A DNA stretch of 33,000 nt. It comes from Dicyema japonicum (Eukaryota > Animalia > Dicyemida). The stretch covers positions 83,157 through 116,156 of the forward strand of contig RDEW01000049.1 of assembly GCA_011109175.1 (NCBI GenBank), written 5' to 3'. Position 1 is the first letter of the stretch. Every line of letters starts with the position of its first letter. Shown piece after piece: positions 134 to 32,827 of the stretch. The position numbers and the translations under genes are program-made. A model generated the notes under the pieces. That model saw only the letters and a program-made list of their open reading frames with translations, did no database searches and was not told where the DNA came from.

Positions 134-1690
134 CACCTAACAATTTGACATTATTTTGCCTTTCTTTCTGAGTGGTCCTGAGGCTACTAAATAATAATTA
201 ATTAACAGGACTGTAAATAAAAATAGACATTAAAAGCATTATGTAAATAAAAAGATATACTCCATCCTCATTTTCGAAAACGATAGACAGCTCAAAAATT
301 ATCTTTAACATGTTTTCCCGCGACAGTCGCGTTTAACCAAAACTCTCAAATGTGAAGGATTCAAATAGCCTGAATGTTTCTGATCACAAGTCGACAGCAA
401 TCTTCGATAAAATTCAGCTAAAAAAGCTGTCCATAGAATAGGCCACATTCCACATTTTTTTCCATGTACGTATAGATTAACCGAAAGCATCAAGTTAACG
501 AGATGAAGGATTCTCCCTGCAGTATAGTCTCATGAATTTTTAATTGTCGGCATTTTAGTGTAATCATATCTTCGATTAGTAAATTAATTATTATATTGAG
601 CGACTTTAATGGCTAGGTAATTTACCTTACAAGATAAGACCTCGAAACAATCAGTCCCACGAGATACTAGTATATTTTAACATGTGTAACGCCCCAAGCA
701 ATGTTTCAACCATTAGCGAATGGGAATATCGTTATCCCTTCGGGGCGTTGCCATCGCAAAGGAAGAAACTAGTTGTGGCCAGCAGAAAAAGTGCATTTTT
801 AATGTCAAGTTGTTACCTCGAGGACAGCCATAAATTAGCTTAAAGGATGATAACCATCGATTCAGCGTCCACAAATGAATTTGCATTAACACAAAATAAG
901 GTCAAATCGGAGCAAGGTAGTTATTCTCACTGCCTCTTTGTCAGAACGTTGCCAAATTTACCACATTGATAAACATTCAACCAAGGATTTGTTAAATAAT
1001 TTCTAGTCGTCTTGAAGCAGACCTTCTAGCATCATATTCCTCTCAAAGAACTTTTTTTAAAAACATATCTTAATGTGATTTCAGATTAATTCGGTCATTT
1101 AGATCATTATGGAAATGTCCTCCTAAACGTCCAGAGATCCTGAAATAAGAGAAGTGGTAAAGTCAGAATAAACTTATGACATCCACATTTGTTGCGAATA
1201 ATATTAAGGATGCTAATAGCATCTATAGTCATCAAATGTATATTTAAAATTACTTTAACGGTTGACCTAATTTTACTGTCAAGGAGAAATATGACCTATT
1301 TTTACATTCAAGTAAAAAAGAACATCGGAGGTTGAAAATCTTTTAGTCCTGATAAATCGATATGTAGCCAAAATCGCACAAAAAAAATATTTTGTCATTA
1401 ATTGATTACCTTATTCGATTTTTTAATATTTCACATAAAATCAATTCGAGAGAGCGAATGTTGGTCATTCGTTACTTGGAACAATATCATCTATTTGATT
1501 CTAAAGAAGGCAAAAGATTCTCTTATCATACTCAGGCTAACTACTTCATACTGCTTTGTGTTAATTTCACGTCTAATCCTCCAAAATTAGACCAATTAAA
1601 TTACCTTGCAGTACTCTTGTCTGAAAAAAAATAATTTCATTTACCCTGCAGTACTTTTGTCTAAAAAAGAATTAGCTATCATCATTCTTC

Positions 1691-1815
1691 TAAAACAAAA
1701 TCCAGGTCATCCGCATATCTTAGTTCCTAGATAAAAGTAGGACAATTTTTAGCTCTCAGATTACGAAGAGCAGCTTCTAGATAGACAACAAAAGGATTGG
1801 TTATTGTGAGTCAAC
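1691..1815 (-). mobile_element. Non-LTR retrotransposon RT remnant (YADD motif) inside duplication copy A
   Basis: Minus strand reads PFVVYLEAALRNLRAKNCPTFI*ELRYADDLDF, i.e. RT domains 4-5 with an in-frame stop; same remnant at 30001-30125 (+). Confidence 0.75.
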
Positions 1816-1888
1816 TTCTGAAGTGTCAATGTGTGTAGCCTATCTTCAGATTCACTTAAAATTTTATTTTCGCGCAAATTGACCTGTA

Positions 1889-2030
1889 ATTAAACATTAT
1901 TCAAAAGATATTAAACTTTTTGACACAATTTTTAAGTATTTTGATAAAGTTACTAAACATTAAGGCAAAGTTATTAGACATTTTTGACAAATTTATTAAA
2001 TTTTATGGTAAAATTATTAAACAAATCGGA
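1889..2030. repeat. Degenerate ~21-bp tandem array upstream of LRR-like gene A
   Basis: About 6-7 units such as attaaactttttgacacaattt, actaaacattaaggcaaagtt, attagacatttttgacaaattt, attaaattttatggtaaaatt; also present in copy B (~29780-29925). Confidence 0.55.
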
Positions 2031-2199
2031 AAACCATGTAAATTGTGTGAATTTAATTAAATTATTTTTTAATTTTATTTTTTTAATCCATCACTTTATT
2101 TAATAAAATTATAATTAATTATGACGACAGTATTTCATGTAGTAATTTTTATTTCTTGTGGTTATTGTATATTTATTATTTTGGTATTTAATCTTATAG

Positions 2200-2974
2200 A
2201 TGTTTTCTTTTCTCGTGTTAAACTTGTCATTCGATATTTTGACATCACAGAATTTATGCAAAAACGAATTAACAGTGAGTAGAACTCTGTATTAAATATA
2301 AATTAATAAGATATTGGATTAATTGTACATATTCGATAACTGGCCTACCTGAATTTTATGTAGCTGCATTAATTGTTCAAAATATTGAATTTGAACCTGA
2401 TGTCATCTTTTCATTATTGGGAATGAATTTAGATAGATTGTATTAATTATTAATTATTCATAGTCAATGTGGTTATTATGATGAAAGTTTAAAAACTGTA
2501 GACAACAAAACATTCCCACCTACCATTAAGGACATGTTACATATTTTTTTAAATTTATAGAATTTTTGATTACTGTAATTCCCTCAAATTCATATCGATC
2601 GAATTTGCGGAAAATTTATCATTACTTGAAATTATGTACATTTTTTGTAATTAATGTAGATCCTTTCCTCAAGGAATAAGTGTAATTCAAAATTTTAAAG
2701 TGGGTTCCAACTTTATTACTTTAAATGAGTATTTTTAATAATAATAATATAGTGTTATCGTTTGCATCAATTCATTCGATAATCCAGAGGCGTATGATAT
2801 TTTATTTAGTATAGATATGAAGCAAAAACTAATAGACTATTATCTATCATAGATAATAAATTGTATATGTTAGAAAATAATATATTTAGAGGAAACAGCA
2901 GGCCGACAAGTGAATATTTCAGTCTAATAATCTGCAGTGCCATTAAAAACAAGTATAATGTACTTGGAATTTGA
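2200..2974 (+). CDS. Putative secreted LRR-like glycoprotein, paralogue A (201 aa, 8 exons, 7 mini-introns)
   Basis: Exons 2200-2288, 2311-2439, 2464-2535, 2561-2635, 2660-2728, 2753-2791, 2815-2862, 2890-2974. Introns are 22,24,25,24,24,23,27 nt, all GT..AG and all phase 2. Spliced ORF: MFSFLVLNLSFDILTSQNLCKNELTVSRTLYWINCTYSITGLPEFYVAALIVQNIEFEPDVIFSLLGMNLDRFQCGYYDESLKTVDNKTFPPTIKDIIFDYCNSLKFISIEFAENLSLLEIISFPQGISVIQNFKVGSNFITLNDVIVCINSFDNPEAYEAKTNRLLSIIDNKLGNSRPTSEYFSLIICSAIKNKYNVLGI*. Splice sites are conserved in paralogue B. The LRR call comes from LxxIxFxxCxxLxxI-like motifs and is less certain than the CDS. The start may instead be the ATG at 2121. Confidence 0.88.
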
Positions 2975-3905
2975 AGAGTTCAATTAAACATTTAACTAAC
3001 TTAATCGTTCATTTTTCTGGGATATAAAATTGGTGTTAATTAATTCAAATTTATTATGATTTAATTATTATCCTGGTTGGACAACTGAATCACACAGCTA
3101 TACTTTTGTCTCTAATAAAATAATTTCACTTCAAAAGACGATTACAGAAGTAATCGACTTTGATAGGTGTTAAAGAACGGACGGTTTTCCTCAGATTTAT
3201 ACAAAACGGCGTATGCAATAACCTTATTAATCATATAAGGACTTAAACTACTTGCTTTACTCACACACGATACTCTCAATGAAGAGGAATATGTTCAAAC
3301 AGTTCTGAACGATGATGGGAGTATTGACTATATAAGGAGCATTGTCATTTTACTTCGAATACTGCAATATAAACCAAAATGGTGCCATATAATAAAATAT
3401 TTAGACTAGGAGATTTAATGCAACTCTCTTTGAAAGACTCCGAAACTGATCAAAGCACTCCATGAAGACGAGGACGTTTATATTCTCTACCCATAAAGAA
3501 CACAGTAATACAATGCACAAATTTAATAAAAATTAACCATGCCCTTTTTCTAGACCACCGATTGGATTAACCCTTATCAAATACTCCAAAACAACACCAA
3601 ACAAAACTGGATCATTCCCCACAAACTTACAGGTACAGCGACAGCTTGACTCATACCAAGTTCAACTTGAGAATGAAATGCGCACAACACCTACGCTACG
3701 AGCTCCAGCACCTCATTGAAAGTCCGTCATACACGAACCTGGATCTGCCAAATCGTAACTAAAGTGTAGTTCAGCCTGCATTTCAGCGGGGAGGTCCTCA
3801 GAGAGATATTCTTTGAGAAATTCTTTTGAATAATTAACTCCAAGTTGTTCCGTTCACTCAAATCTTTGAAATCCAGTATAAAAAAGACACTCCTTGCGGC
3901 TAGGC

Positions 3906-5731: not shown

Positions 5732-5985
5732 ATTTTTTTGATTTTTTTAATAATTTAAATCATTGATTTTTTTGTTGATTAAAATCAAATGATTTAAATC
5801 TAACAACTCTGACATTAATCCATGCGGATGCATCCACGACTATATGGAAAGATGATATTTTTTTGATTTTTTTAATAATTTAAATCATTGATTTTTTTGT
5901 TGATTAAAATCAAATGATTTAAATCTAACAACCCTGACATTAATCGATGCGGATGCATCCACGACTATATGGAAAGATGATATTT
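5732..5985. repeat. 125-bp direct tandem duplication containing a DNA-transposon-like terminus
   Basis: Units 5732-5856 and 5857-5981 differ at 2 nt. Each has repeated atttaaatc/gatttaaatc motifs ending in caac(c/t)ctg (reverse complement CAGGGTTG), reminiscent of hAT-type termini. Confidence 0.85.
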
Positions 5986-7721: not shown

Positions 7722-8290
7722 AGGCCTACTCTTCATCGTATATCTTCAACCCATGCTTAAATTCAATGAGCATACTTTCGAGCGTTCTCTTCAGAACAAC
7801 CGATAGGATGTAAGTCCTCGTTGATTCTTCAATAGATAATTTATCCATATGATTCTTGAAGCATCTTGTGAAACTCTATCCCATGTCAAAACCACTGGGA
7901 AAATCTTCACTCGGCATTCATAGAGCAGCGAAAGTTCATTTGCAAGCAAGTCATATTTGTGAAGTTTCTCAACTTCAACTTGCTTTAGTCGGTCATGTGA
8001 GGTAATGCCCACTTCAATTAAGGTTACTTTCTTCTTTGTTTTGTCGTACACAAAAATATCAGGTTTATTGTATCGGGCTTTTGTTTTTGTCATAATCGAC
8101 GTGTCAAATCTGATTTCGACATTTTGATTCGTCAATATTGACTGAACCGAATGTCCTTTCAATTTCCTGCTTCTTTTGAGTCCATAAATTCGATAAAGTT
8201 GAAGATGGATGCAATTTACCACTTCATTGTGTCATCGGAGCATTTCACCAAACTGAGTGCCCAAATGATCAGCAGTTTTCTATCTTTTTT
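7722..8290 (-). mobile_element. RLE-type non-LTR retrotransposon 3' fragment (Zn-knuckle remnant plus restriction-like endonuclease)
   Basis: KTADHLGTQ..HNEVVNCIH...KPDIFVYDKTKKKVTLIEVGIT...EKLHKYDLLANEL matches the RHN / PD-(D/E)xK / KxxKY signature; frameshifted near the end. Confidence 0.9.
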
Positions 8291-8296
8291 TACCAA

Positions 8297-8990
8297 TGGT
8301 GTCCCACAAGGTTGCCCTTTATTACCCGCCTTATTTAACTTACACATGTCCGATTTACCACAACTCGATAATAAAGACGATTTCCTCCTATCAAATGTTA
8401 ATGACCAATTAATCGGATCCCGCGATCAAGATCTCCTAAAGGCATCAGAAAGACTACAAGAATACCTTCACAAGATTCAAATTTGGTTAAATTATAATCT
8501 ACTTGATATATCTACTGAAAAATCTTCTTCGTCCTTATTTACCTCTGACAAACGACTTTCATCTCACGTCGACGGCATCTCTGGTAGCTGCTCAAGAAAG
8601 CTAGGGAAAATCAAAACTATTTTTGATAATCAATCTAAATTGTTGTATAAGCAATTTGTTGAGCCATCTGTCAGCTATGCCAGTGCGTCATGGGGGATCA
8701 ATCTGTCCTGGACAAACAAACAAAGAATCCTTGGACAATCAGGCCAAAACAACCACTACTATCAGTAATCTCGAGAAACTAGAAAAACTAATACCCTCAT
8801 AACTTAAAGACTTTATCCGACAAACTGGAAAGTGATTTGCTTCTCTGTCAGGCAGTGCAGCTCTCAACAATACACAGTCACAACGTGTCTTATGAGAAAG
8901 GTATTCATCACCCCTCTCTAATTCCTATTCCCCAAACCACTCAGCCCACAGAGAAGTTGTGTTGGATCCCAGAAGGCGCAGGAGGAGAAA
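8297..8990 (+). mobile_element. APE-type LINE reverse transcriptase remnant (domains 4-7 and thumb, internally deleted)
   Basis: NGVPQGCPLLPALFNLHMSDLP is RT domain 4; the YADD motif is eroded to KDD; LYKQFVEPSVSYASASW is the thumb motif. Confidence 0.85.
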
Positions 8991-9589: not shown

Positions 9590-12050
9590 GCCGAAGCACT
9601 GATTACGTTTGACACATGTGAAGGTCATGATGGTGTCAAATGTTACTCCCAATTCTCGGCTTGTTTCTTATTTGAGATTAATTCACCATTCAAAAATAGT
9701 TCGGCCGAATAACTTGATGCCTTCTATTCGACGTAAAAGCGAGGTAAATGACTTTTCTGTGGACGTTGACATTGAATTTTTTTCAACCATTCATGGAGTC
9801 TATCCAGAGTAGTTTTTTGATAACACTCAGGAATTTTATCTGGTCCGCTTGAGTAGGTTAGTTTTGAGGATTTAATGGTATTTTCAAGCTCCACTGATGA
9901 AAACGATATATGATCATGACGACATCTTGTTTTATCAATGACAAGGGAGGACCCTCGTACTTTTTATGAGGAAAGTAGCTGTTCTGAGCGTAGAACTTCA
10001 TCATTATATCCAGTTTTTTTTGCTGAAATCAGGACTGTTTCTCTTCTCAGGGTTCTTTATCATTGAGAGAGTCTTCCACATGATTGACAGGGATCACTGT
10101 TTGTTAAGGTAATTTTTCTCCATTCGTCCATTTCCCTTTTTGAGATTTTCTTTATTTCGCTATCAAGCATTCGAATTGTGTATGTAATTTCTGATGATGG
10201 CCTTTGGATGCTTTTGAGTCGATTACTTTCATTCATAATCTTCTTCGTTTTGCGGTCAAACGTTTAATGTAGGATTGATCTTTCCCCGATAAATACCTTC
10301 ATTGCCTTCTGGATCTTTTTGTCAACATAAGAGACTGCATTATCGAGTTAGTTGAAACCTACTGCGTTGAAATCGGATAAGTTCATGTCCATATATTGAG
10401 AAAAATTTTTCCAATTTCCGTTTCTGTAATCCAGTAAAGTGTTTCGTCTTCCTTCCGAAATGAGCGTGCCCTTTATCCAAATGAAAATAAGATTGTGGTC
10501 GCTCCAAAAGTCATAAATCNNNNNNNNNNNNNNNNNNNNNNNNNNNNNNNNNNNNNNNNNNNNNNNNNNNNNNNNNNNNNNNNNNNNNNNNNNNNNNNNN
10601 NNNNNNNNNNNNNNNNNNNNNNNNNNNNNNNNNNNNNNNNNNNNNNNNNNNNNNNNNNNNNNNNNNNNNNNNNNNNNNNNNNNNNNNNNNNNNNNNNNNN
10701 NNNNNNNNNNNNNNNNNNNNNNNNNNNNNNNNNNNNNNNNNNNNNNNNNNNNNNNNNNNNNNNNNNNNNNNNNNNNNNNNNNNNNNNNNNNNNNNNNNNN
10801 NNNNNNNNNNNNNNNNNNNNNNNNNNNNNNNNNNNNNNNNNNNNNNNNNNNNNNNNNNNNNNNNNNNNNNNNNNNNNNNNNNNNNNNNNNNNNNNNNNNN
10901 NNNNNNNNNNNNNNNNNNNNNNNNNNNNNNNNNNNNNNNNNNNNNNNNNNNNNNNNNNNNNNNNNNNNNNNNNNNNNNNNNNNNNNNNNNNNNNNNNNNN
11001 NNNNNNNNNNNNNNNNNNNNNNNNNNNNNNNNNNNNNNNNNNNNNNNNNNNNNNNNNNNNNNNNNNNNNNNNNNNNNNNNNNNNNNNNNNNNNNNNNNNN
11101 NNNNNNNNNNNNNNNNNNNNNNNNNNNNNNNNNNNNNNNNNNNNNNNNNNNNNNNNNNNNNNNNNNNNNNNNNNNNNNNNNNNNNNNNNNNNNNNNNNNN
11201 NNNNNNNNNNNNNNNNNNNNNNNNNNNNNNNNNNNNNNNNNNNNNNNNNNNNNNNNNNNNNNNNNNNNNNNNNNNNNNNNNNNNNNNNNNNNNNNNNNNN
11301 NNNNNNNNNNNNTTTTTTATCATTGAGAGAGTCTTCCACATGATTGACAGGGATCCCTGTTTGTTAAGGTAATTTTTCTCCATTCGTCCATTTCCCTTTT
11401 TGAGATTTTCTTTATTTCGCTATCAAACACTCGAATTCTGTATGTAATTTCTGGTGATGGCCTTTGGATGCTTTTGAGTCGATTACTTTCATTCATAATC
11501 TTCGTTTTGCGGTCAAACGTTTAATGTAGGATTGATCTTTCCCCGATAAATACCTTCATTGCCTTCTGGATCTTTTTGTTAACATAAGAGACTGCATTAT
11601 CGAGTTAGTTGAAACGTACTGCGTTGAAATCGGATAAGTTCATGTCCATATATTGAGAAAAATTTTTCCAATTTCCGTTTCTGTAATCCAGTAAAGTGTT
11701 TCGTCCTCTTTCCGAGATGAGCGTGCTCTTCATCCAAATGAAAATAAGATTGTGGTCGCTCCAAATGTCATTAATCAATGTTTGAAGATCGAGGCTAGAC
11801 TAAAAAAATTACGAAACGATGNTAAGTTCATGTCCATATATTGAGAAAAATTTTTCCAATTTCCGTTTCTGTAATCCAGTAAAGTGTTTCGTCTTCTTTC
11901 CGAAATGAGCGTGCCCTTCATCCAAATGAAAATAAGATTGTGGTCGCTCCGAAAGTCATAAATCAATGCTTGAAGATCGAGGCTAGACTAAAAAGAATTA
12001 CGGAACGATGGATTTTTGGAGAGTCCCAGCCTTCAATGCCCCTACAATCT
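9590..12050 (-). mobile_element. Degraded APE-type LINE (endonuclease end to RT), split by a gap and assembled redundantly
   Basis: SDHNLIFIW...LDYRNGNWKNF (APE C-terminus), FSSVELENTIKSSKLTYSSGPDKIP (RT domain 0), then LDRLHEWL and LGVTFD (RT domains 6-7). 10056-10519 recurs from 11316, and 11635-11821 recurs at 11823-12009. Confidence 0.8.
10520..11312. other. Assembly gap (793 N)
   Basis: Run of N; the three poly-X ORFs in the track are artefacts of it. Confidence 1.
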
Positions 12051-13066: not shown

Positions 13067-13189
13067 TTAATTTTCTATTAATATTTTAAAATTGGCCGAT
13101 ATTTTTAGTAAAATAATTTTTTGCAAAACAAATTGTTTAAATTAAAATAAATTTAATATCAGGGCTATGTGGTAGCGTATTTTTTGTTA

Positions 13190-13590
13190 CAAGCGTCTAA
13201 CTTGCACTCAGAAACAAGAAATCATTAAATATAAGTATGTGAAACAATATCTAAAAGATTCTCCGATTATAAAAATGATGTTGGAAGACAATCAAATTTT
13301 ACTCAACAGCGTCTAACTTGCACTCAGAAACAAGAAATCATTAAATATAAGTATGTGAAACAATATCTAAAAAATTCTCCGATTATAAAAATGATGTTGG
13401 AAGACAATCAAATTTTACTCAACCGGGATAATATTTTGGGACAAAACCTGCAAAACACTAAAATCTCCACCCCATGACGATAAACTGGTAGAGTGGATGG
13501 GTTCAATGGAACCAACAGGTTTGTCAAATGAATAACTGTTAAGGTGCTCTGATAGACGACTCTTATAGTACATTTACATGGTGAAATGAA
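13190..13590 (+). mobile_element. Tigger/pogo-like transposase N-terminal remnant (CENP-B-type HTH)
   Basis: KRLTCTQKQEIIKYK...ILLNRDNI...DDKLVEWM...LHGE motifs occur in the expected order, with stops, frameshifts and deletions. Confidence 0.55.
13192..13423. repeat. 116-bp direct tandem duplication
   Basis: 13192-13307 and 13308-13423 differ at one base (aaagatt vs aaaaatt). Confidence 0.95.
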
Positions 13591-15665
13591 ATTTTTGCCA
13601 TTGAAAAACTTGTTGAGGAAATTGATTGTGAAGACGACGTAATAATGATCACTTTATAAGAAGGTATAGATTATAATTGCATTAATAATTTCTAGTGATG
13701 ATTAAAACGTTTATTTCTACTAATCCGAGTGGTACATTACCTACGGACTTTCCTGTGAATGAACGGGATGGACAAAACAATAGAACGCATTGAAGTGGTC
13801 AGAGTACAAAAAGACTCCCTAATCCAAATTCTCAACCGGAGTGCCGTGCAAATATTATATTCTCCATGCGATTATCGACCAGGTGAATAAGGAGGACAAA
13901 GATGAGTGGGTGTCGGAAGTTTTCAGAGTATCTNNNNNNNNNNNNNNNNNNNNNNNNNNNNNNNNNNNNNNNNNNNNNNNNNNNNNNNNATTCAATATTA
14001 AATTTAGACATTAGCGTTAACCTGATTTACTCTGGTGATTTACTGAAACTGAAAGAAATTGTCATGAAAAACACGGATAAGGTTATGACTGCGGGGGAAC
14101 TTGTTCTTGTTTACAGTCACTCCCAATTTAACATTATCTAAGAACTAATTTTTGATTTATCGAGGATAAACTAATGTTCGATTCCCCTTATTTCTTAGTG
14201 GCGTAAAAAACAACTCGTCGACTTCGACGACTTTCCTTGCCTCTCCTCTTACATTGTAGAGACAGCCATGACGATTTGATTGACACTTTGAAGACGCATA
14301 GGGACATTTGGTAGAAAAGAGAAGTGATCTACTGACCAAGTATACTTTTTCTGTGCTCTCATTTGACGGAAACCGTGATATTTGCAGGAAATACAAAATG
14401 TTTTGTTGTATATTGAGATAACCGATGGTAATTCACTTTCTTTTACTTTCAGTTCCTTGAAAACAGTTGAAAACCTCAGAAGAGTTAAATGGTTACCTGT
14501 TGATAGAATAATAGTAGAGACAGGTCGTGATATCTATTTTCGGATTCTCCCTGCTGTTCAATGAAACGTATCTGGGAAGCAGACAAGTACATAAAAACGA
14601 GATGGCAAACACTCAAAATTAATAAATGGACAGAAGGATAACTAATTCAAGGACGGAATGGGCCTTCCTGCATAGTTCGGATTTTTATGATTTAAAGCAA
14701 AGTCACGACAATTATAGCTGCTTATAAGGGAATGGACCTCATTGGCAGAAGTGATTATGTAATATTACTTATTCATTGTTCTTTGGGGGGAAAAGATAGA
14801 CTCGATTAAAATGTGAAATTAAAATTGTTTCTGTAAAATAAAGTGGTAGTTATGTTAGATTCTTAGAAGATGCTCTTAAAATTGATCTACGTGGTTGAGT
14901 AGCATTGAAAATGACTATATGTATGAAAGATAAAGTGGGAACTGACTGTCATACTGGAGACTTACAATATTTGGTTTTTCTATCGAAATAGAGCATCTAT
15001 TTATATTAATGAAGTCTTTTAACTCAACTTAGTATCTCAGAGAAAAAATACAGTTTTTATGTTAGAAAGACAGGCAAAAGACTACGCCGCTGACTGGTCC
15101 CCTATGACATCTGTCAACCATAGATAATTGGAATTTACATGCAATGCTTAGGCGATGAGTTAAAACTAGTTCTTCGCGAACAATCCTAGTTACCTCTGGA
15201 AGACTTATAACGACAAAGTGTCCTGCAACTACAGAGGTAGTGTCAAAATAACGAATTATATGACAATTAGCCTTCCATGCAAAAGTGCTTCTATTCAGGT
15301 CATATAGTTTAGATGAGAATATAAGGATTCCCTCTACTCATTCTCACCAAAGAGTCACTGATTTATTGCTTAAAACCGATCGTCTGCTTAAAATTGAATT
15401 TAAAGATCTATTTAAGTGATCCCATGTCAATATCGACTTATATCGAGCTTCCTCCTAAGATTGGTTTAGGAATCCTGGAACTTTCATAAATGCTAAGATT
15501 TCTTCTTGTATCTCTCTATTTTTGATAAAAAGTAATATATTTATACAAACTAAAATTTAAACAAATAATTTAAATAATTAAATAAATTTATAATTATTGT
15601 TTGATGGGCCCTTCGTTTACATCTGTATTTTTTAAATATACTCAGTCAATTAAAGATTTCTTAGT

Positions 15666-24334: not shown

Positions 24335-26010
24335 TGTGATGGACAATTTAGCTTGCTCATTGTTAGTAATTTTTTTGGACAATTTAGCTTGCTCATCGTT
24401 AGTAAGGTTTTTTGATTATTCGACATTCAATTTTTTATCCGATTTCTATCGTGATTTCTATTATGTTAGATTATTTTTTATTCATAAACGTTATGATTTT
24501 TTACGTTATGACTATAAAGAATTTATAGCGGCAAACCTAAATTTCTAGCGTGATATTTAGCTTGGAAGATCATTTTGTTGTAATGGGTCATAAATGGGTT
24601 TTGTGAAAGACTGCGTGGAATAAATCTGTATAGACTCTATGTTGTAGGTTAGTACGTGGATGTAATTTTAAGAGATGCTTTGGATGTAAATTTCTCGTAA
24701 TTTTCCGAGACACTGTTAATAAGATAGAGAATGTTTCTATTATCAATGAAAGCTATTGTAAATGTGCAATAAATGTAAAGATCTGAAATACACTGATCTC
24801 AAGTTAGTCATATCTCTGGTGAATGAAACCCTAATGGAGTTCGTGGCGAAATCATTAAACGAGTTTTCACACTGAAGATTAAATAAAATTGAGTATGAAT
24901 GTCGACAAAGATACTTCACTGTAGATAGTTAGATCATCAGAAAAGTCATTCGAAATTGTGAAGTTTGAAAATTTTCGCGTCCTTTAAAAGTATGATTTCT
25001 TTTAATTGTAGATTGGAGATATTAATCAACATGTGGTCGCTTTTGTACAATTGAACGTTTTCAGATTGATCTTATAATCTGAGATTGTCAATAATAAATC
25101 AAAATTTCAAATTGATTTTAACGGTCACTATATATATACTAGGTTGGTTATTTTAAACAATTTTTGTAGATTCGCATTCGTCAGACCACTTTCTAATAAG
25201 TCTGGAAAAGAAGTGTGTGAAAACCTTAGATCTATGTTTTGTCTGAATCGGCCATGCAAAAATCTTCAGTCAGACAATGGGTCTGAATTCAGAAATCGAG
25301 AAATAAAAAGCAAATTCACGGAAAGCTTAACAACCCTTGGGCACAAGAGATCGTCTAAAGATTCAATCAAACGATGACGAGAAAGTTGTCCAAAATGCTG
25401 GATAACAGTGAAAAAATTGGCTTGATAAAATAGAAATTGCTGTGTACAGTCATAACATTTCTGGCCATTCATTTTCTAACGAAAGTCCTTCGAAGGATAT
25501 CGAGGAATAAAGGGAATAAATTTAATAATTCATCGTTACACATATATCACNTAATAAATCAAAATTTCAAATTGATTTTAACGGTCACTATATATATACT
25601 AGGTTGGTTATTTTAAACAATTTTTGTAGATTCGCATTCGTCAGACCACTTTCTAATAAGTCTGGAAAAGAAGTGTGTGAAAACCTTAGATCTATGTTTT
25701 GTCTGAATCGGCCATGCAAATATCTTCAGTCAGACAATGGGTCTGAATTCAGAAATCGAGAAATAAAAAGCAAATTCACGGAAAGATTAACAACCCTTGG
25801 GCACAAGAGATCGTCTAAAGATTCAATCAAACGATGACGAGAAAGTTGTCCAAAATGCTGGATAACAGTGAAAAAATTGGCTTGATAAAATAGAAATTGC
25901 TGTGTACAGTCATAACATTTCTGGCCATTCATTTTCTAACGAAAGTCCTTCGAAGGATATCGAGGAATAAAGGGAATAAATTCAATAATTCATGGTTACA
26001 CATATATCAC
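24335..26010 (+). mobile_element. Second Ginger-like (SCAND3/KRBA2-type) integrase element, decayed
   Basis: Zn-finger remnant (IIRKVIRNC), ERFQIDL, FAFVRPLSNKSGKEV, LQSDNGSEFRN, PWAQEIV*RFNQT. Candidate 22-nt intron at 24990-25011. TGT-starting 36-bp-period repeat at 24335-24405 may be a terminus. Confidence 0.78.
25092..26010. repeat. 459-bp tandem duplication joined by a single N (likely allelic assembly redundancy)
   Basis: 25092-25550 vs 25552-26010 differ at 4 positions; N at 25551. Confidence 0.95.
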
Positions 26011-27775: not shown

Positions 27776-28808
27776 ATTATATACAGGAGAAATATCAAAT
27801 CACCGACGCTTTAAGTTTGTTCTTCAAATTAGTTCGTCTACCAAAAAATCCTCAACTTCTTGGATCTCCACTGCTCGATGGTCTTTCAAATCAAAGTTTT
27901 TTAAATTCTTGGTAGGAGTGTCTTTTTATACTGGATTTCAAGGATTTGAGTGAACGGAACAACAATAGTTAATTATTCAAAAGAAATTCTCAAAGATCAT
28001 CTCTCTGAGGACTTCCCCGCTGAATTACATTCTGAACTACACATTAGTTACGATTTGGCAGATTCAAGTTAGTGTAAGACGGACCTTCAATGGGGTGCTG
28101 GAGCTCGTGGCGTAGATGTCGTGCGCATTTCATTCTCAAGTTGAACTTGGTGTGATTCAAGCTGTCGCTGTGTTCCTGTATGTTTGTGGAGAAGGATCTA
28201 GTTATGTTTGGTTTTGTTTTGGAGAATTTGATAAGGGTTATTCGAATTGGTGTTCTAGAAAGAAGGTATGGTTGGTTTTTATTAATTTTGTGCTTCGTTT
28301 TACTGTGTTCTTTATAGGAAGGAAGATAAATTTCTTGTCTTCATGGAGTGTTTTGATCAATTTCGGAGTCTATCGAAAAAAGTTGCATAAACCATTCTGG
28401 TCAAAATATTTTATTAGACAACTCTATTTTGGTTTATCTTGCACTATTCGCAGTAAAATGAAGATGTTCCATATGAGTCTATAGTCCCATCATCGTTCTC
28501 AACTGTTTGAACATATTCCTCTTCATTGAGAGTAATCGTGTGTGAGTAAAGCTAGTTGTTTAAGTCCTTATATGATTAATTATGATAATGCATACTCTGT
28601 TCTGCATAAATCTGAGGAAAACCGTCCGTTCTTTAACACCTATCAAAGTCGATTTTTTCTGTAATCGTTTTTTTAAGTGAAATTATTCTTTTAGAGACAA
28701 AAGTATAGCTGTGTGATTCAGTTGTCCAACCAGGATAATAATTAAATCATAATAAATTTGAATTAATTAACACAATTTATATCCCAGAAAAATGAACTAT
28801 TAAGTTAG

Positions 28809-29613
28809 TTAAATGTTAAATTGAACTCCGCAAGTTCCAAGTACATTATACTTGTTTTTATTGGCACTGCAGACTGAAATAACATTATTAATTACGTAAT
28901 TCACTTGTCGGCCTGCCGTCTTTTCTAAATATATTATTTTCTAACATATACAATTTATTATCTTCGAGATATAATACTCCATTAGTTGATACTTTATATC
29001 TATACTAAATATAATATCATACGCCTCTGGATTTCCGAATGAATCAATACAAACGATAACACTATATTATTATCATTAAAAATACTCATTTAAATAAATA
29101 AGGTTAGAAGTAATTTTAAAAATTTGAATAACATTTATTCCTCTAGGAAAGTTACTACATTAATTATAAATTCGTACATATTGTTAAGTAATGATAAATT
29201 TTCCGCAAATTCGATCGATATGAATTTGAGAGAATGACAGTATTCAAAATATCTATAAATTTAAAAATATATGTAACATGATGAAAATAGTAGGCGGGAA
29301 TGTTTGGTTGTCTACAGATTTTAAACTTTGATCATTATTACCACAACTACTATAAATAATTAATAATTAATACAAACCATCTAACTTCATTCTTATTAAT
29401 GAAAAGTTGACATCAGGTTCAAATTTAATATTTTGAACAACTAATCCAATTATTTTAAAATCAGATAGGCCAGTTATCGAAACTGTACAATTATTCCAAT
29501 ATCTTAATAATTTATATTTAATACAGAGCTCTATTTCTTATTGAATCGTTTTTGCATAAATTCTGTGATGTCAAAATATCGAATGACAAGTTTAACACGA
29601 GAAAAGTGAACAT
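28809..29613 (-). CDS. Putative secreted LRR-like glycoprotein, paralogue B (204 aa, 9 exons, 8 mini-introns)
   Basis: Exons 29613-29525, 29502-29374, 29349-29278, 29252-29178, 29154-29086, 29061-29023, 28999-28952, 28924-28896, 28873-28809. Introns are 22,24,25,23,24,23,27,22 nt, all GT..AG; the first seven are phase 2 and the last phase 1. Spliced ORF: MFTFLVLNLSFDILTSQNLCKNDSIRNRALYWNNCTVSITGLSDFKIIGLVVQNIKFEPDVNFSLIRMKLDGFSCGNNDQSLKSVDNQTFPPTIFIIYFEYCHSLKFISIEFAENLSLLNNINFPRGINVIQIFKITSNLIYLNDVIVCIDSFGNPEAYKVSTNGVLYLEDNKLKDGRPTSELLCSANKNKYNVLGTCGVQFNI*. No internal stops. The start may instead be the ATG at 29692. Confidence 0.9.
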
Positions 29614-30000
29614 CTATAAGATTAAATACCAAAATAATGAATATATGATAACCACAAGAAATAAAAAATACTACATGAAATACAGTCGTCATAATTAATA
29701 ATAATTTTATTAAATAAAGTGTTGGATTAAATAAATAAAATTAAAAAATAGTTTAATTAAATTCACACAATTAACATGGTATTCCTATTTGTTTAATAAT
29801 TTTACCATAAAATTTAATAAATTTGTCAATAATATCTAATAACTTTGCCTTAATGTTTAGTAACTTTATCAAAATGTTTAAAAATTGTGTCAAAAAGTTG
29901 AATACCTTTTGAATAATGTTTAATTACAGGTAAATTAGCGCGAAAATCAAATTTTGTGTGAATCCGAAGAGAGGCTACGCACATTGACACTTTAGAAGTT

Positions 30001-30125
30001 GACTCACAATAACCAATCCTTTTGTTGTCTATCTGGAAGCTGCTCTTCGTAATCTGAGAGCTAAAAATTGTCCTACTTTTATCTAGGAATTAAGATATGC
30101 AGATGACCTGGATTTTGGTTTTGAA
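30001..30125 (+). mobile_element. RT YADD remnant inside duplication copy B
   Basis: PFVVYLEAALRNLRAKNCPTFI*ELRYADDLDFGFE; the in-frame stop is shared with copy A, so decay predates the duplication. Confidence 0.75.
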
Positions 30126-31124
30126 GTATGATGATATCTAATTCTTTTTTAGACAAGAGTACTGCAGGGTAAATGAAATTATATTTTTTCAGACAAGAGT
30201 ACTGCAAAGTAATTTAATTGGTCTAATTTTGGAGGATTAGACGTGAAGTTAACACAAAGCTGTATGAAGTAGTTAGCCTGAGTATGATGGAAGAATCTTT
30301 TGCCTTTTTTAGAATCAAATAGATGATATTGTTCTAAGTAACGAATTATCGTCATTCGCTCTACTGATTTGATTTTATGTGAAATATCGAAAAATCGAAT
30401 AAGGTAATCGTTTGATGACATATGAATGTTTCTGTGCGATTTTGGCTACAGATTGATCTATCAGGACTTATAGCTTTTCAACCTCCGATCTTCTTTTTTA
30501 CTTGAAAGTAAAAATAGGTCATATTTCTTCTTGACAGTTAAATTAGGTCAACCGTTGAAGTACTTTTAAATATACATTTGATGACTATTGATGCCATTAG
30601 TATCCTTAATATTATTCGCAACCAAATGTGGATGCCTTTGGTTTATTCTGACATTACCACTTTTCTTATTTCTTGATCTGTGGACGATTAGGAGGACATT
30701 TTTTTAATGATCTAAATGACCGAATTAATCTGAAATCACATTAAGATATGTTTTTGAAAAATAAAGAGTTCATTGAGACCAATATGATACTGGAGGTTTG
30801 CTTCAAAACGAGTAGAAATTAATCAACAAATGCTTGGTTGAATGTTTATCAATGTGGTAAAATTGGCAACGTTCTGACGACGAGGCAGTGAGAATAGCTA
30901 CCTAGCTCCGTTTTGACCATAATTTTGTGTTAATGAAAATGCATCTGTGGACGCTGAATCGATGGTTATCAGTCTTTAAGCTGATTTATGGCTGGTCCCC
31001 GACACTAACTTGACTTTAAAAAATGTTTCTTTCTTTGCGATGGCAACACCCCGAAGGGATAACGATACTCCCATTCGCTAATGGTCGAAACATTGCTGCG
31101 GCGTTCACATGTTAAAAAATACTC

Positions 31125-31545: not shown

Positions 31546-32760
31546 TAAATCGTGTCCTTTGAGATCGCATGAACGAGTTTCCTCAACTCTCCCCGATCCG
31601 TTGCAATTTGGAGTAGCCTTGATATAAGAATTCCCGTAACCTCCTCCACCGTGGATAGCTACCAAGTCTTTGGTCGGCCAGGTCTTCTCTTCCGAGTGAT
31701 ATTGCTCAGCATATTGGTTCTTTCAAGGGAATCAAAGCGGACAACATGCCCAAAAAACGCCATTCTGTGTTTTACGATTCTTCCTTTAGCGAAATGTCCG
31801 TTTCCACCCGTTTGAGTACATCAATGTTTTTAATTTAAAAGTCCAATGGATTCTTACTAACCTCCTTCAGTACCACAGCTCAAAAGCATCAATTTTTCGT
31901 CTATCCACTTTTTTCAGTATCCATGATTCTCCGCGGAATAGGAAAACCGGTAACACGATTACATTAACCAGTCTGCATTTGGTCCTTAATCAAACATCTT
32001 TGCTTTTCCAAATTCTATTCATTCTCTGGAAGGTGTCTCGTCCCATGGCAATTCGCCTCTTGATTTCCAAACCTCCGTCATTATTCCGATTAATTAGACT
32101 TCCCAGAAAGACAAAATTATCTCAAATCTCTTGTTTCTTATTCCCAATTTTTTAGTTCCATTATTAGCAGTAGTCATAATTTCGGTCTTCTTGATATTTA
32201 GCAATAAACCAAAGACGACGCTCTATTCTCTGAATCTTAGAATCAACTCCCTGAGGCCATCCTCTGTTTCAGCCAGTAAGGTTGCATCGTCAGCATAGCG
32301 CAAATTATTGATGTTGCTTCATCCAATTTTAATCCCTTTTTTGATACAGTATCCAATTTAGTCATGATCATTTCGGCATAAATATTGAATAGGATGGGAG
32401 ATAATAAGCATCCTTGTCTTACTCCTTTACTAATTTTAAACCAATCGGTATCTCCATACACTGTTCTAACAGTAGCTTCTTGATCCTTATAAAGAGATTT
32501 GATAAGCAATATCAGATGGGCATCGAATCCAAATTCTTTTAAAGCGGACCACAGCTTGTCATGTATAACGGAATCAAAAGCTTTCCGATAGTCAATGAAG
32601 CACATGTATACACTCTTTTGGGATTCATGGGCTTTCTCCATAATCCACCGGACATTTGCTATATGGTCACGTGTGCCTCGTCCCTTCCTGAATCTTGCTT
32701 GGACATCCGGTAGAATCATTTCGGCATTTGGCATTAGACGATGTTGTATAATGTCACAGG
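31546..32760 (-). mobile_element. RTE/BovB-like LINE, 5'-truncated, RT to 3' end, frameshifted
   Basis: QARFRKGRGTRDHIAN...CFIDYRKAFDSVIH...KGVRQGCLLSPILFNIYAE(fs)INNLRYADDATLLAE...FVFLGS...DAFELWY*RRL...FFGHVVR...PTKDLVAIHGG; 3' GGACACGA motif. Confidence 0.95.
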
Positions 32761-32827
32761 CGCAACAGTTTATCAAATTAATGATTTAATTTATCAAATT
32801 AATATATATAATTTGACCAAACTAGTG

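Follow-up and report, generated by a model that had tools for sequence, protein, structure and literature searches.

An orphan multigene family with ultra-short introns and variable coding patches, probably under diversifying selection

Why would the exons of a duplicated gene diverge faster than the introns between them? The question arises from a 33,000-nucleotide (nt) stretch of contig RDEW01000049.1 (the window, from whose first letter all positions are counted), in which two copies of one gene lie mid-way in the arms of a 3.2-kb inverted duplication, copy A at 2200-2974 on the plus strand and copy B at 28809-29613 on the minus strand. A previous reading of the letters (the sequence-only reading) saw here a hidden pair of secreted genes resembling those for leucine-rich repeat (LRR) proteins, with a signature of diversifying selection. 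The present analysis leads to a multigene family of orphan proteins, expressed but unannotated, that varies in patches and is probably under diversifying selection, a reading in which we place somewhat more belief than doubt. Coding divergence that is faster than the divergence around it suggests selection for protein diversity and is not proof of it.

Both gene models, open over 201 and 204 amino acids (aa) once introns of 22-27 nt are removed, were rebuilt from the sequence identically to those proposed before. Copy A consists of 8 exons (2200-2288, 2311-2439, 2464-2535, 2561-2635, 2660-2728, 2753-2791, 2815-2862 and 2890-2974) and 7 introns, all in phase 2 (2289-2310, 2440-2463, 2536-2560, 2636-2659, 2729-2752, 2792-2814 and 2863-2889, of 22, 24, 25, 24, 24, 23 and 27 nt). 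Copy B, on the minus strand, consists of 9 exons (29613-29525, 29502-29374, 29349-29278, 29252-29178, 29154-29086, 29061-29023, 28999-28952, 28924-28896 and 28873-28809) and 8 introns (29524-29503, 29373-29350, 29277-29253, 29177-29155, 29085-29062, 29022-29000, 28951-28925 and 28895-28874, of 22, 24, 25, 23, 24, 23, 27 and 22 nt), of which the first seven are in phase 2 and the eighth, in phase 1, has no counterpart in copy A. All 15 introns run from GT to AG, are very AT-rich and carry GTA or GTT at the 5' end. The internal exons (129, 72, 75, 69, 39 and 48 nt) are all multiples of three and, because introns 1-7 share phase 2, each is an in-frame cassette; six further introns would match the phase of the first by chance with a probability of (1/3)^6, or about 0.0014. 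Intron positions are the same in the two copies despite 16% divergence, and the C-terminal frame survives different insertions and deletions (indels), namely an insertion of 8 nt and a deletion of 18 nt in A and an additional intron in B.

The standard genetic code fits the gene, which passes 200 codons without any of the three stops and encodes Gln by CAA and CAG. The ciliate code (TAA and TAG read as Gln) was rejected, as it only adds a tail dense in TAA and TAG to a frame that is already open over 200 codons. A six-intron model with a 110-nt exon 6 was also discarded, since copy A then contains a TAG and intron 6 is followed by a stop; an extra 23-nt intron removes both. The chance control was an intron-aware dynamic programme that freely removes any 20-30-nt GT..AG segment. 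With it, the best spliced open reading frame (ORF) on the sense strand measures 650-713 nt in the two copies, compared with 104-137 nt on the antisense strand and with a mean of 158 nt and a maximum of 482 nt in 100 dinucleotide shuffles. Copies A and B rank top among the spliced ORFs of the window, the others above the cut-off including reverse transcriptase (RT) fragments.

Four public read sets of one study (X1-X4, library type unrecorded) were compared with positions 28400-29900. X1, X2 and X4 come from one sample and behave like DNA, and X3 comes from another and behaves like RNA; of the copy B words that were sampled, only 27-40% are found in these runs, which may therefore not be the source material of the assembly. 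In X1, X2 and X4 the introns are retained, and the summed depth peaks over the flanks and exon 1 and is lowest over exons 2-3. The depth of X3 is limited to approximately 28808-29700, is near zero over the flanks that are deepest in the other three runs and falls just past the stop codon from 1825 to 173 and then to 52. One 30-nt loose end in X3 agrees at 30 of 30 letters with copy A across the predicted join of exons 4 and 5, and has no match in the genomic copy. Two more loose ends, from A-like paralogues, match across the exon 3/4 junction apart from 1-2 mismatches, and in a third paralogue intron 4 is present in X2 and removed in X3, with the join at the same point. In X3 record 22 the match ends exactly at the start of exon 2 (29502) and is followed by 16 letters at odds with the intron. 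Transcription of the gene follows from these reads, as does splicing at the predicted sites for at least introns 1, 3 and 4. Of the junctions foreseen by the sequence-only reading, the reads cover introns 3 and 4 (across the junctions) and intron 1 (at its acceptor boundary), and introns 2 and 5-8 are without direct read support. Introns 1, 3 and 4 are ultra-short spliceosomal introns by their GT..AG ends, their length below 30 nt and their removal in RNA. DNA elimination (of TA-bounded internal eliminated sequences) was rejected as the source of these joins, the observed junction being a GT..AG removal with no retained TA.

The 27-nt segment counted as intron 7 (28925-28951, minus strand, in B; 2863-2889 in A) is in frame, free of stops and 100% identical between the copies, and it may be retained as coding, in which case the product gains 9 residues. 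The X3 depth drops in the bin that contains this segment, which favours splicing without settling it.

The family to which the two copies belong has many members, with at least dozens of variants. Contigs at least 92% like the 1.5-kb stretch 28400-29900, each of about 70-140 nt, number 1780 in X1, 531 in X2 and 409 in X4, so the gene pair of the sequence-only reading gives way to a family, which probably comprises hundreds of variants. A single variant letter is carried by up to 36 different contigs, and both A-type and B-type sequences are present in the runs. In addition, one contig found in the three DNA-like runs joins 28895 to 29011 and skips 115 nt of copy B (28896-29010), which take in exons 7 and 8 with the 27-nt segment between them, as well as 11 nt of intron 6, with breakpoints within or at the edge of introns. 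The letters between the two sides of this contig are not known, and some family members seem, tentatively, to be without exons 7 and 8.

The contrast between exons and their surroundings is the central observation. Exons 1-7 differ between A and B at 84 of 521 nt (16.1%), with 2 of these differences in the first 22 codons and no frameshift, all as previously counted; indels are absent as well, and the shared Cys, six in all, are kept. The recount gives 59 amino-acid differences over the full length in place of 58, about 10 purely synonymous codons in place of 9 (on an earlier exon model, different from the final one around exons 6/7), and 9/168 differences plus one gap column over seven introns in place of 6/145. 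Compared with the exons by Fisher tests, divergence is lower in introns 1-7 (5.4%, p = 2e-4), in the near flanks (1550-2199 and 2975-3300; 6.1%, p = 1e-9), in the whole non-gene part of the arm (9.7%, p = 4e-5) and in its distal parts (12.5%, p = 0.048). The earlier statement that exons diverge faster than the adjacent introns while the frame is preserved therefore holds (16.1% vs 5.4%; probability of frame retention about 0.01). The exon replacement divergence, with the frame kept, lies above every one of these same-locus references at p values from 1e-9 to 0.048, the neutrality of the references being assumed. Base composition or mutation bias was rejected as the cause of the excess, since the GC content of the near flanks (0.27) is close to that of the exons (0.28) and the excess persists within A<->T changes, which amount to 7.7% of A/T sites in exons vs 3.1% in near flanks (p = 7e-4). 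The 9/168 of the introns is about what a neutral divergence of 10-12% would give after subtraction of some 30% constrained positions. Once the splice signals are set aside, intron divergence is thus near the neutral expectation, and it is the exons, not the introns, that are unusual.

The codon analysis covers 173 ungapped codons. Non-synonymous differences (Nd) amount to 71.3 over 413 sites (N) and synonymous differences (Sd) to 12.7 over 106 sites (S), giving dN = 0.196 and dS = 0.131. The ratio of the two, omega, is 1.50 (NG86), 1.62 (LWL85), 1.51 (YN00) or 1.56 (maximum likelihood), and a separate GY94 fit gives 1.57 (F3x4), 1.85 (F1x4) and 1.43 without the leader. By hand calculation from counts, Jukes-Cantor divergence is about 0.104 for the whole non-coding arm and about 0.137 for the distal arm parts, and dN exceeds both (Z about 3.6 and about 2.2, respectively). 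When 84 substitutions with the observed spectrum are placed at random, the frame remains stop-free in 0.9-1.0% of trials; the reading frame is maintained by selection. Identical runs of 61 nt (in the leader; expected 0.002) and 45 nt (a 16-residue block of exon 4; expected 0.03) occur within exons that are 16% diverged, so constraint is patchy. The 40 variable places listed in near-B read contigs divide into 20 in flanks, 20 in exons and none in introns. The exonic ones comprise 19 non-synonymous variants and 1 synonymous variant, where chance would give about 78:22 (P about 0.04).

According to the explanation that we favour, A and B would be inverted paralogues of one member type in a many-copy, transcribed and unannotated family. 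Amino-acid change would be favoured in patches of the protein, and the leader exon, the 16-residue block of exon 4, the Cys, the introns and the flanks would stay constant. Such a pattern would be that of variable extracellular families at a host-parasite or self/non-self interface. The same-phase introns and the conserved flanks would also allow exons to be exchanged between copies with the frame intact.

Several points weigh against this explanation. Omega is not significantly greater than 1: Fisher tests give p = 0.17-0.24, the bootstrap 95% interval is 0.85-3.0 and the GY94 likelihood-ratio test gives p = 0.09-0.33, although with two sequences the test is underpowered, and the window has too few copies for site models. 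The proposal of a rapidly diversifying family is accordingly borne out in part, by the exon excess, the preserved frame and the point estimate of omega, which stays at 1.5-1.85 after correction for AT bias, and falls short at the significance of that estimate. The 19:1 count is not independent of the comparison of A with B, since some of the variants come from copy A itself. Positions 3301-3840, the most diverged of the non-coding stretches, reach 14.9%, no different from the exons (p = 0.61), and the flanks of low divergence may be constrained or homogenised rather than neutral. As non-coding divergence ranges from 6% to 15% within the duplication, the size of the exon excess depends on the reference chosen. 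The summed contig depth, finally, gives no copy number for the family.

The predicted protein adds to the points on this side. It is about 200 aa long, its N-terminus is hydrophobic, and six Cys are conserved between A and B, at residues 20, 35, 75, 102 and 149 and in a C-terminal 'CSA'. Homology searches used exon pieces of 22-52 aa, and for these pieces no homologue, domain or fold match appears in the databases searched. Ten exon pieces have no match in Pfam at E values up to 10 apart from a chance-level DsbC_N (E = 0.076), the sequence search of the PDB returns nothing but two chance-level matches (E = 1.3), and the feature search of the ESM Atlas returns nothing. A profile of exon 2 recovers two low-complexity repeat artefacts from 1.84 billion representatives and nothing else. 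The C-terminal 52-aa piece finds nothing in a word-indexed search of 5.8 billion proteins, nor do conserved 27-28-mers in two metagenome scans. An ORF of the window, looked up by exact match among public assemblies, returns nothing either.

Secretion, a further part of the sequence-only reading, is plausible and rests on a moderately hydrophobic N-terminus; the start codon is itself ambiguous. From ATG 2200, mean hydropathy is 1.5 (residues 2-16), no basic residue precedes the core, and no clear -3/-1 site is seen by eye. An upstream ATG at 2121 (region 2121-2199, plus strand; 29692 in B) lies in the leader, which is transcribed, as X3 depth starts near 29700, and opens a 53-codon overlapping frame. 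Combined with a possible 25-nt intron (2226-2250 / 29587-29563), it would lead to an alternative and far more hydrophobic N-terminus, with a best 15-residue Kyte-Doolittle mean of 2.4-2.9 vs 1.7 from ATG 2200. One X3 paralogue variant shows a conservative leader change in the ATG-2200 frame, which mildly favours ATG 2200.

LRR proteins may carry one repeat per same-phase exon, as do the cassette-built variable lymphocyte receptors of jawless fish. The present gene resembles them in its same-phase internal exons of 23-25 codons, in a Leu/Ile/Asn-rich product and in an LxxLxLxxNxL motif at residues 131-141, joined by another near 165-175 if the 27-nt segment is read through. In contrast to those proteins, it has no Pfam LRR match among its exon pieces, its motif count does not exceed that of shuffles, and neither periodicity nor a significant internal repeat is found; the LRR-like label of the sequence-only reading is not supported. 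LxxLxLxxN/CxL matches twice in A and once in B; in the relaxed form the count stays within that of shuffles (P = 0.16 and 0.53), and the strict form reaches P = 0.024 in A only. No hydrophobic periodicity of 22-28 residues is detected, and autocorrelation is about 0 at lags 18-30. The best off-diagonal self-alignment is not significant as an internal repeat (P = 0.04 in A and 0.19 in B), and, aligned to tiled LRR consensus units, the proteins score no higher than shuffled sequences (z = -1 to 2.8). What remains in favour of an LRR protein is the layout of one module per exon (23-25 codons, one phase) and the composition; an AT-rich genome yields Leu/Ile/Asn richness anyway. Unlike for the lymphocyte receptors, there is no sign of somatic assembly, and the resemblance is a lead only.

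The main rival holds that copies of a repeat unit drift under relaxed, nearly neutral conditions (omega about 1), while flanks, leader and introns are held back by purifying selection on promoter, termination or splicing signals or by concerted evolution. We regard it as possible, though unlikely. It agrees with an omega that is statistically inseparable from 1 and with a dS (0.13) and a divergence of the distal arm parts (12.5-14.9%) that are close to the exon divergence; in introns this short, many positions may also hold splicing information (PMC13644364). It sits badly with a frame left open by 84 substitutions (P about 0.01) and by differing 3' indels in the two copies, and with a dN above the most diverged non-coding part (0.196 vs about 0.137; Z about 2.2). 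Constraint over about 1 kb of near flank outside the transcript is unlikely, and the introns (9/168) are not oddly conserved, whereas the exons are oddly diverged. Another rival is a mosaic history, in which a recent duplication of the arms (flanks at about 6%) would have been followed by ectopic gene conversion of the coding parts from distant family members. Many related copies could serve as donors, and the differences lie in clusters separated by identical stretches of 45 and 61 nt. Conversion, however, would need to jump over seven interleaved introns of 22-27 nt, unless these do not vary throughout the family. Constant introns and flanks around variable exons family-wide would still require selection, and the question would only be moved; we consider the mosaic very improbable.

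A lesser rival takes the 3.2-kb unit for a mobile or self-amplifying repeat, of which the protein is either cargo or the unit's own gene, and the A/B differences for those of its source lineages. In its favour, the flanks are at least as deep as the gene in the DNA-like runs, the unit ends are sharp in both arms, the neighbourhood is rich in fragments of integrases and of RTE-type long interspersed nuclear elements (LINEs), and the unit also holds a conserved 80-codon ORF with no assigned function. However, neither terminal inverted or direct repeats nor a target-site duplication are found at the unit ends, and Pfam and ORF searches detect no transposase, integrase or RT similarity inside the unit. 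A transposon gene would not usually have eight spliceosomal introns and a hydrophobic leader, and a transposon protein should give an omega below 1 between functional lineages. We judge a mobile repeat quite unlikely. An artefact, either a chance ORF from free GT..AG removal in AT-rich DNA or a mis-assembled duplicate, is suggested by the many GT..AG pairs that such DNA supplies and by a window that is a gapped scaffold, and is refuted. The observed spliced ORF length is never reached by shuffles, intron positions are shared at 16% divergence, and exon-exon junctions occur in reads. Moreover, A-type and B-type sequences are both in the runs and the assembly gaps are far from the arms, so the two copies are no mis-assembly.

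The diversifying family that we favour has counterparts in the BspA-like LRR family of Trichomonas vaginalis (PMC2843621), the STEVOR family of Plasmodium (PMC2637975) and the smorf family of Babesia bovis (PMC3459096), which likewise have many copies, several of them transcribed. Common to all are a conserved leader and flanks around variable coding patches, a repeat-rich location and a small Cys-containing product with a hydrophobic N-terminus. By contrast, no sequence relationship to these families is found, the host here looks animal, not protist, and the present gene, known here from sequence and reads, is divided into 8-9 mini-exons by ultra-short introns. Among animals, introns below 30 nt with a bare GTA...AG signal are reported only from dicyemids and myxobolid myxozoans (PMC13644364). 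The LINE in the window is likewise an RTE of animal type, and the host is probably an animal with ultra-short introns, a protist with short introns and the standard code being less likely. The family shares with the genes of those lineages several introns of 22-27 nt per gene, with a minimal GTA or GTT at the 5' end, AG at the 3' end and an A-rich interior (PMC13644364; PMC6736024). It also shares with the Dicyema japonicum genome a gapped, repeat-rich and LINE-rich assembly (PMC6736024), published at 36.7% GC, 4.1% gaps and 49% repeats. Those reports describe conserved genes, unlike the variable orphan family described here.

In D. japonicum, repeats occurring more than 30 times were masked ahead of gene prediction (PMC6736024), and a family like the present one could have been skipped in its annotation through this masking. 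The sequence-only reading had ascribed the oversight to short introns; these are indeed below the usual minimum, but repeat masking is an equally likely reason. If the pattern holds family-wide, this is an expressed, many-copy and fast-changing family of a kind that standard annotation would overlook for two reasons, sub-minimum introns and masking as a repeat. In an animal lineage with ultra-short introns (dicyemids, myxobolid myxozoans), molecules of the host interface would first be sought in such a family, and introns of 22-27 nt between exons offer built-in local references for the mutation rate and a clean natural test. A more far-reaching and improbable proposal is that a minimal parasitic animal here generates diversity by combination: hundreds of copies would swap same-phase mini-exons, with constant ultra-short introns and flanks as joints, and so maintain a shifting repertoire of extracellular recognition or decoy proteins. 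If true, it would be a metazoan counterpart of the antigenic-variation families of protozoa.

The repeat unit that carries the gene extends over 669-3894 (plus strand, arm A) and 27914-31123 (minus strand, arm B). The arms form a single 3.2-kb blastn match, 87.8% identical overall and 77-97% per 100 nt, with abrupt similarity limits, and blastn finds no third copy in the window. The conserved 5' flank (1550-2199, plus strand; about 29614-30263 in B) is 4-7% diverged, is transcribed partly, at its 3' end only, and is very deep in the DNA-like runs, with a summed X1 depth of about 190,000-370,000 at 29726-29878. The conserved 3' flank (2975-3300, plus strand; about 28480-28808 in B) is 6.2% diverged and nearly untranscribed in X3. 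The inner end of the unit (3301-3840 / 27968-28500) has a higher GC content, is 15% diverged like the gene exons and gives no domain match; its nature bears on the choice of a neutral reference within the unit. A 122-codon ORF (28116-28484, plus strand) is present in arm B only.

The 80-codon ORF is found in both arms, at 1392-1634 on the plus strand and 30421-30179 on the minus strand, about 600 nt upstream of the gene and on the same strand as it. It differs between the arms at 23/240 nt and 14/80 aa (dN/dS 0.5-1.0), and has no Pfam domain and no homologue in the word-indexed search of 5.8 billion proteins. Its N-terminal part bears a weak likeness to the frame that the upstream ATG of the gene opens, and the final 15 residues are similar to a frame immediately 3' of the stop codon of the gene. 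In both arms, a motif of about 40-50 nt occurs as a tandem pair after this ORF and as a single copy about 110 nt past the gene stop (1593-1642, 1633-1682 and 3082-3131 in arm A; 30145-30217 and 28689-28721 in arm B). It might be a shared 3' signal or the remnant of an older internal duplication of the unit.

The rest of the window, which has a GC content of about 33% and N runs at 10520-11312 and 13934-13989, contains RTE-type LINE RT fragments, integrase fragments and tandem repeats only. The RT fragments are located at 32243-32776 (minus strand), 8151-8768 (plus strand) and 7791-8222 (minus strand), with RVT_1 matches at E = 9e-22 and 7e-8. Their best matches, 55-70% identical, are spread over animals, the best named one being from Octopus vulgaris (66%); if the source organism is an octopus parasite, this likeness hints at possible horizontal transfer. 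A 460-nt tandem duplication at 25092-25851 (300 nt at 99% identity) includes two integrase-core fragments (rve, E = 3e-6). At 10053-11994, across the 793-nt gap at 10520-11312, lies a very AT-rich tandem repeat (19-25% GC) whose period is about 1257 nt, and shorter tandem pairs are present at 5732-5981 (125 nt) and 13181-13412 (116 nt).

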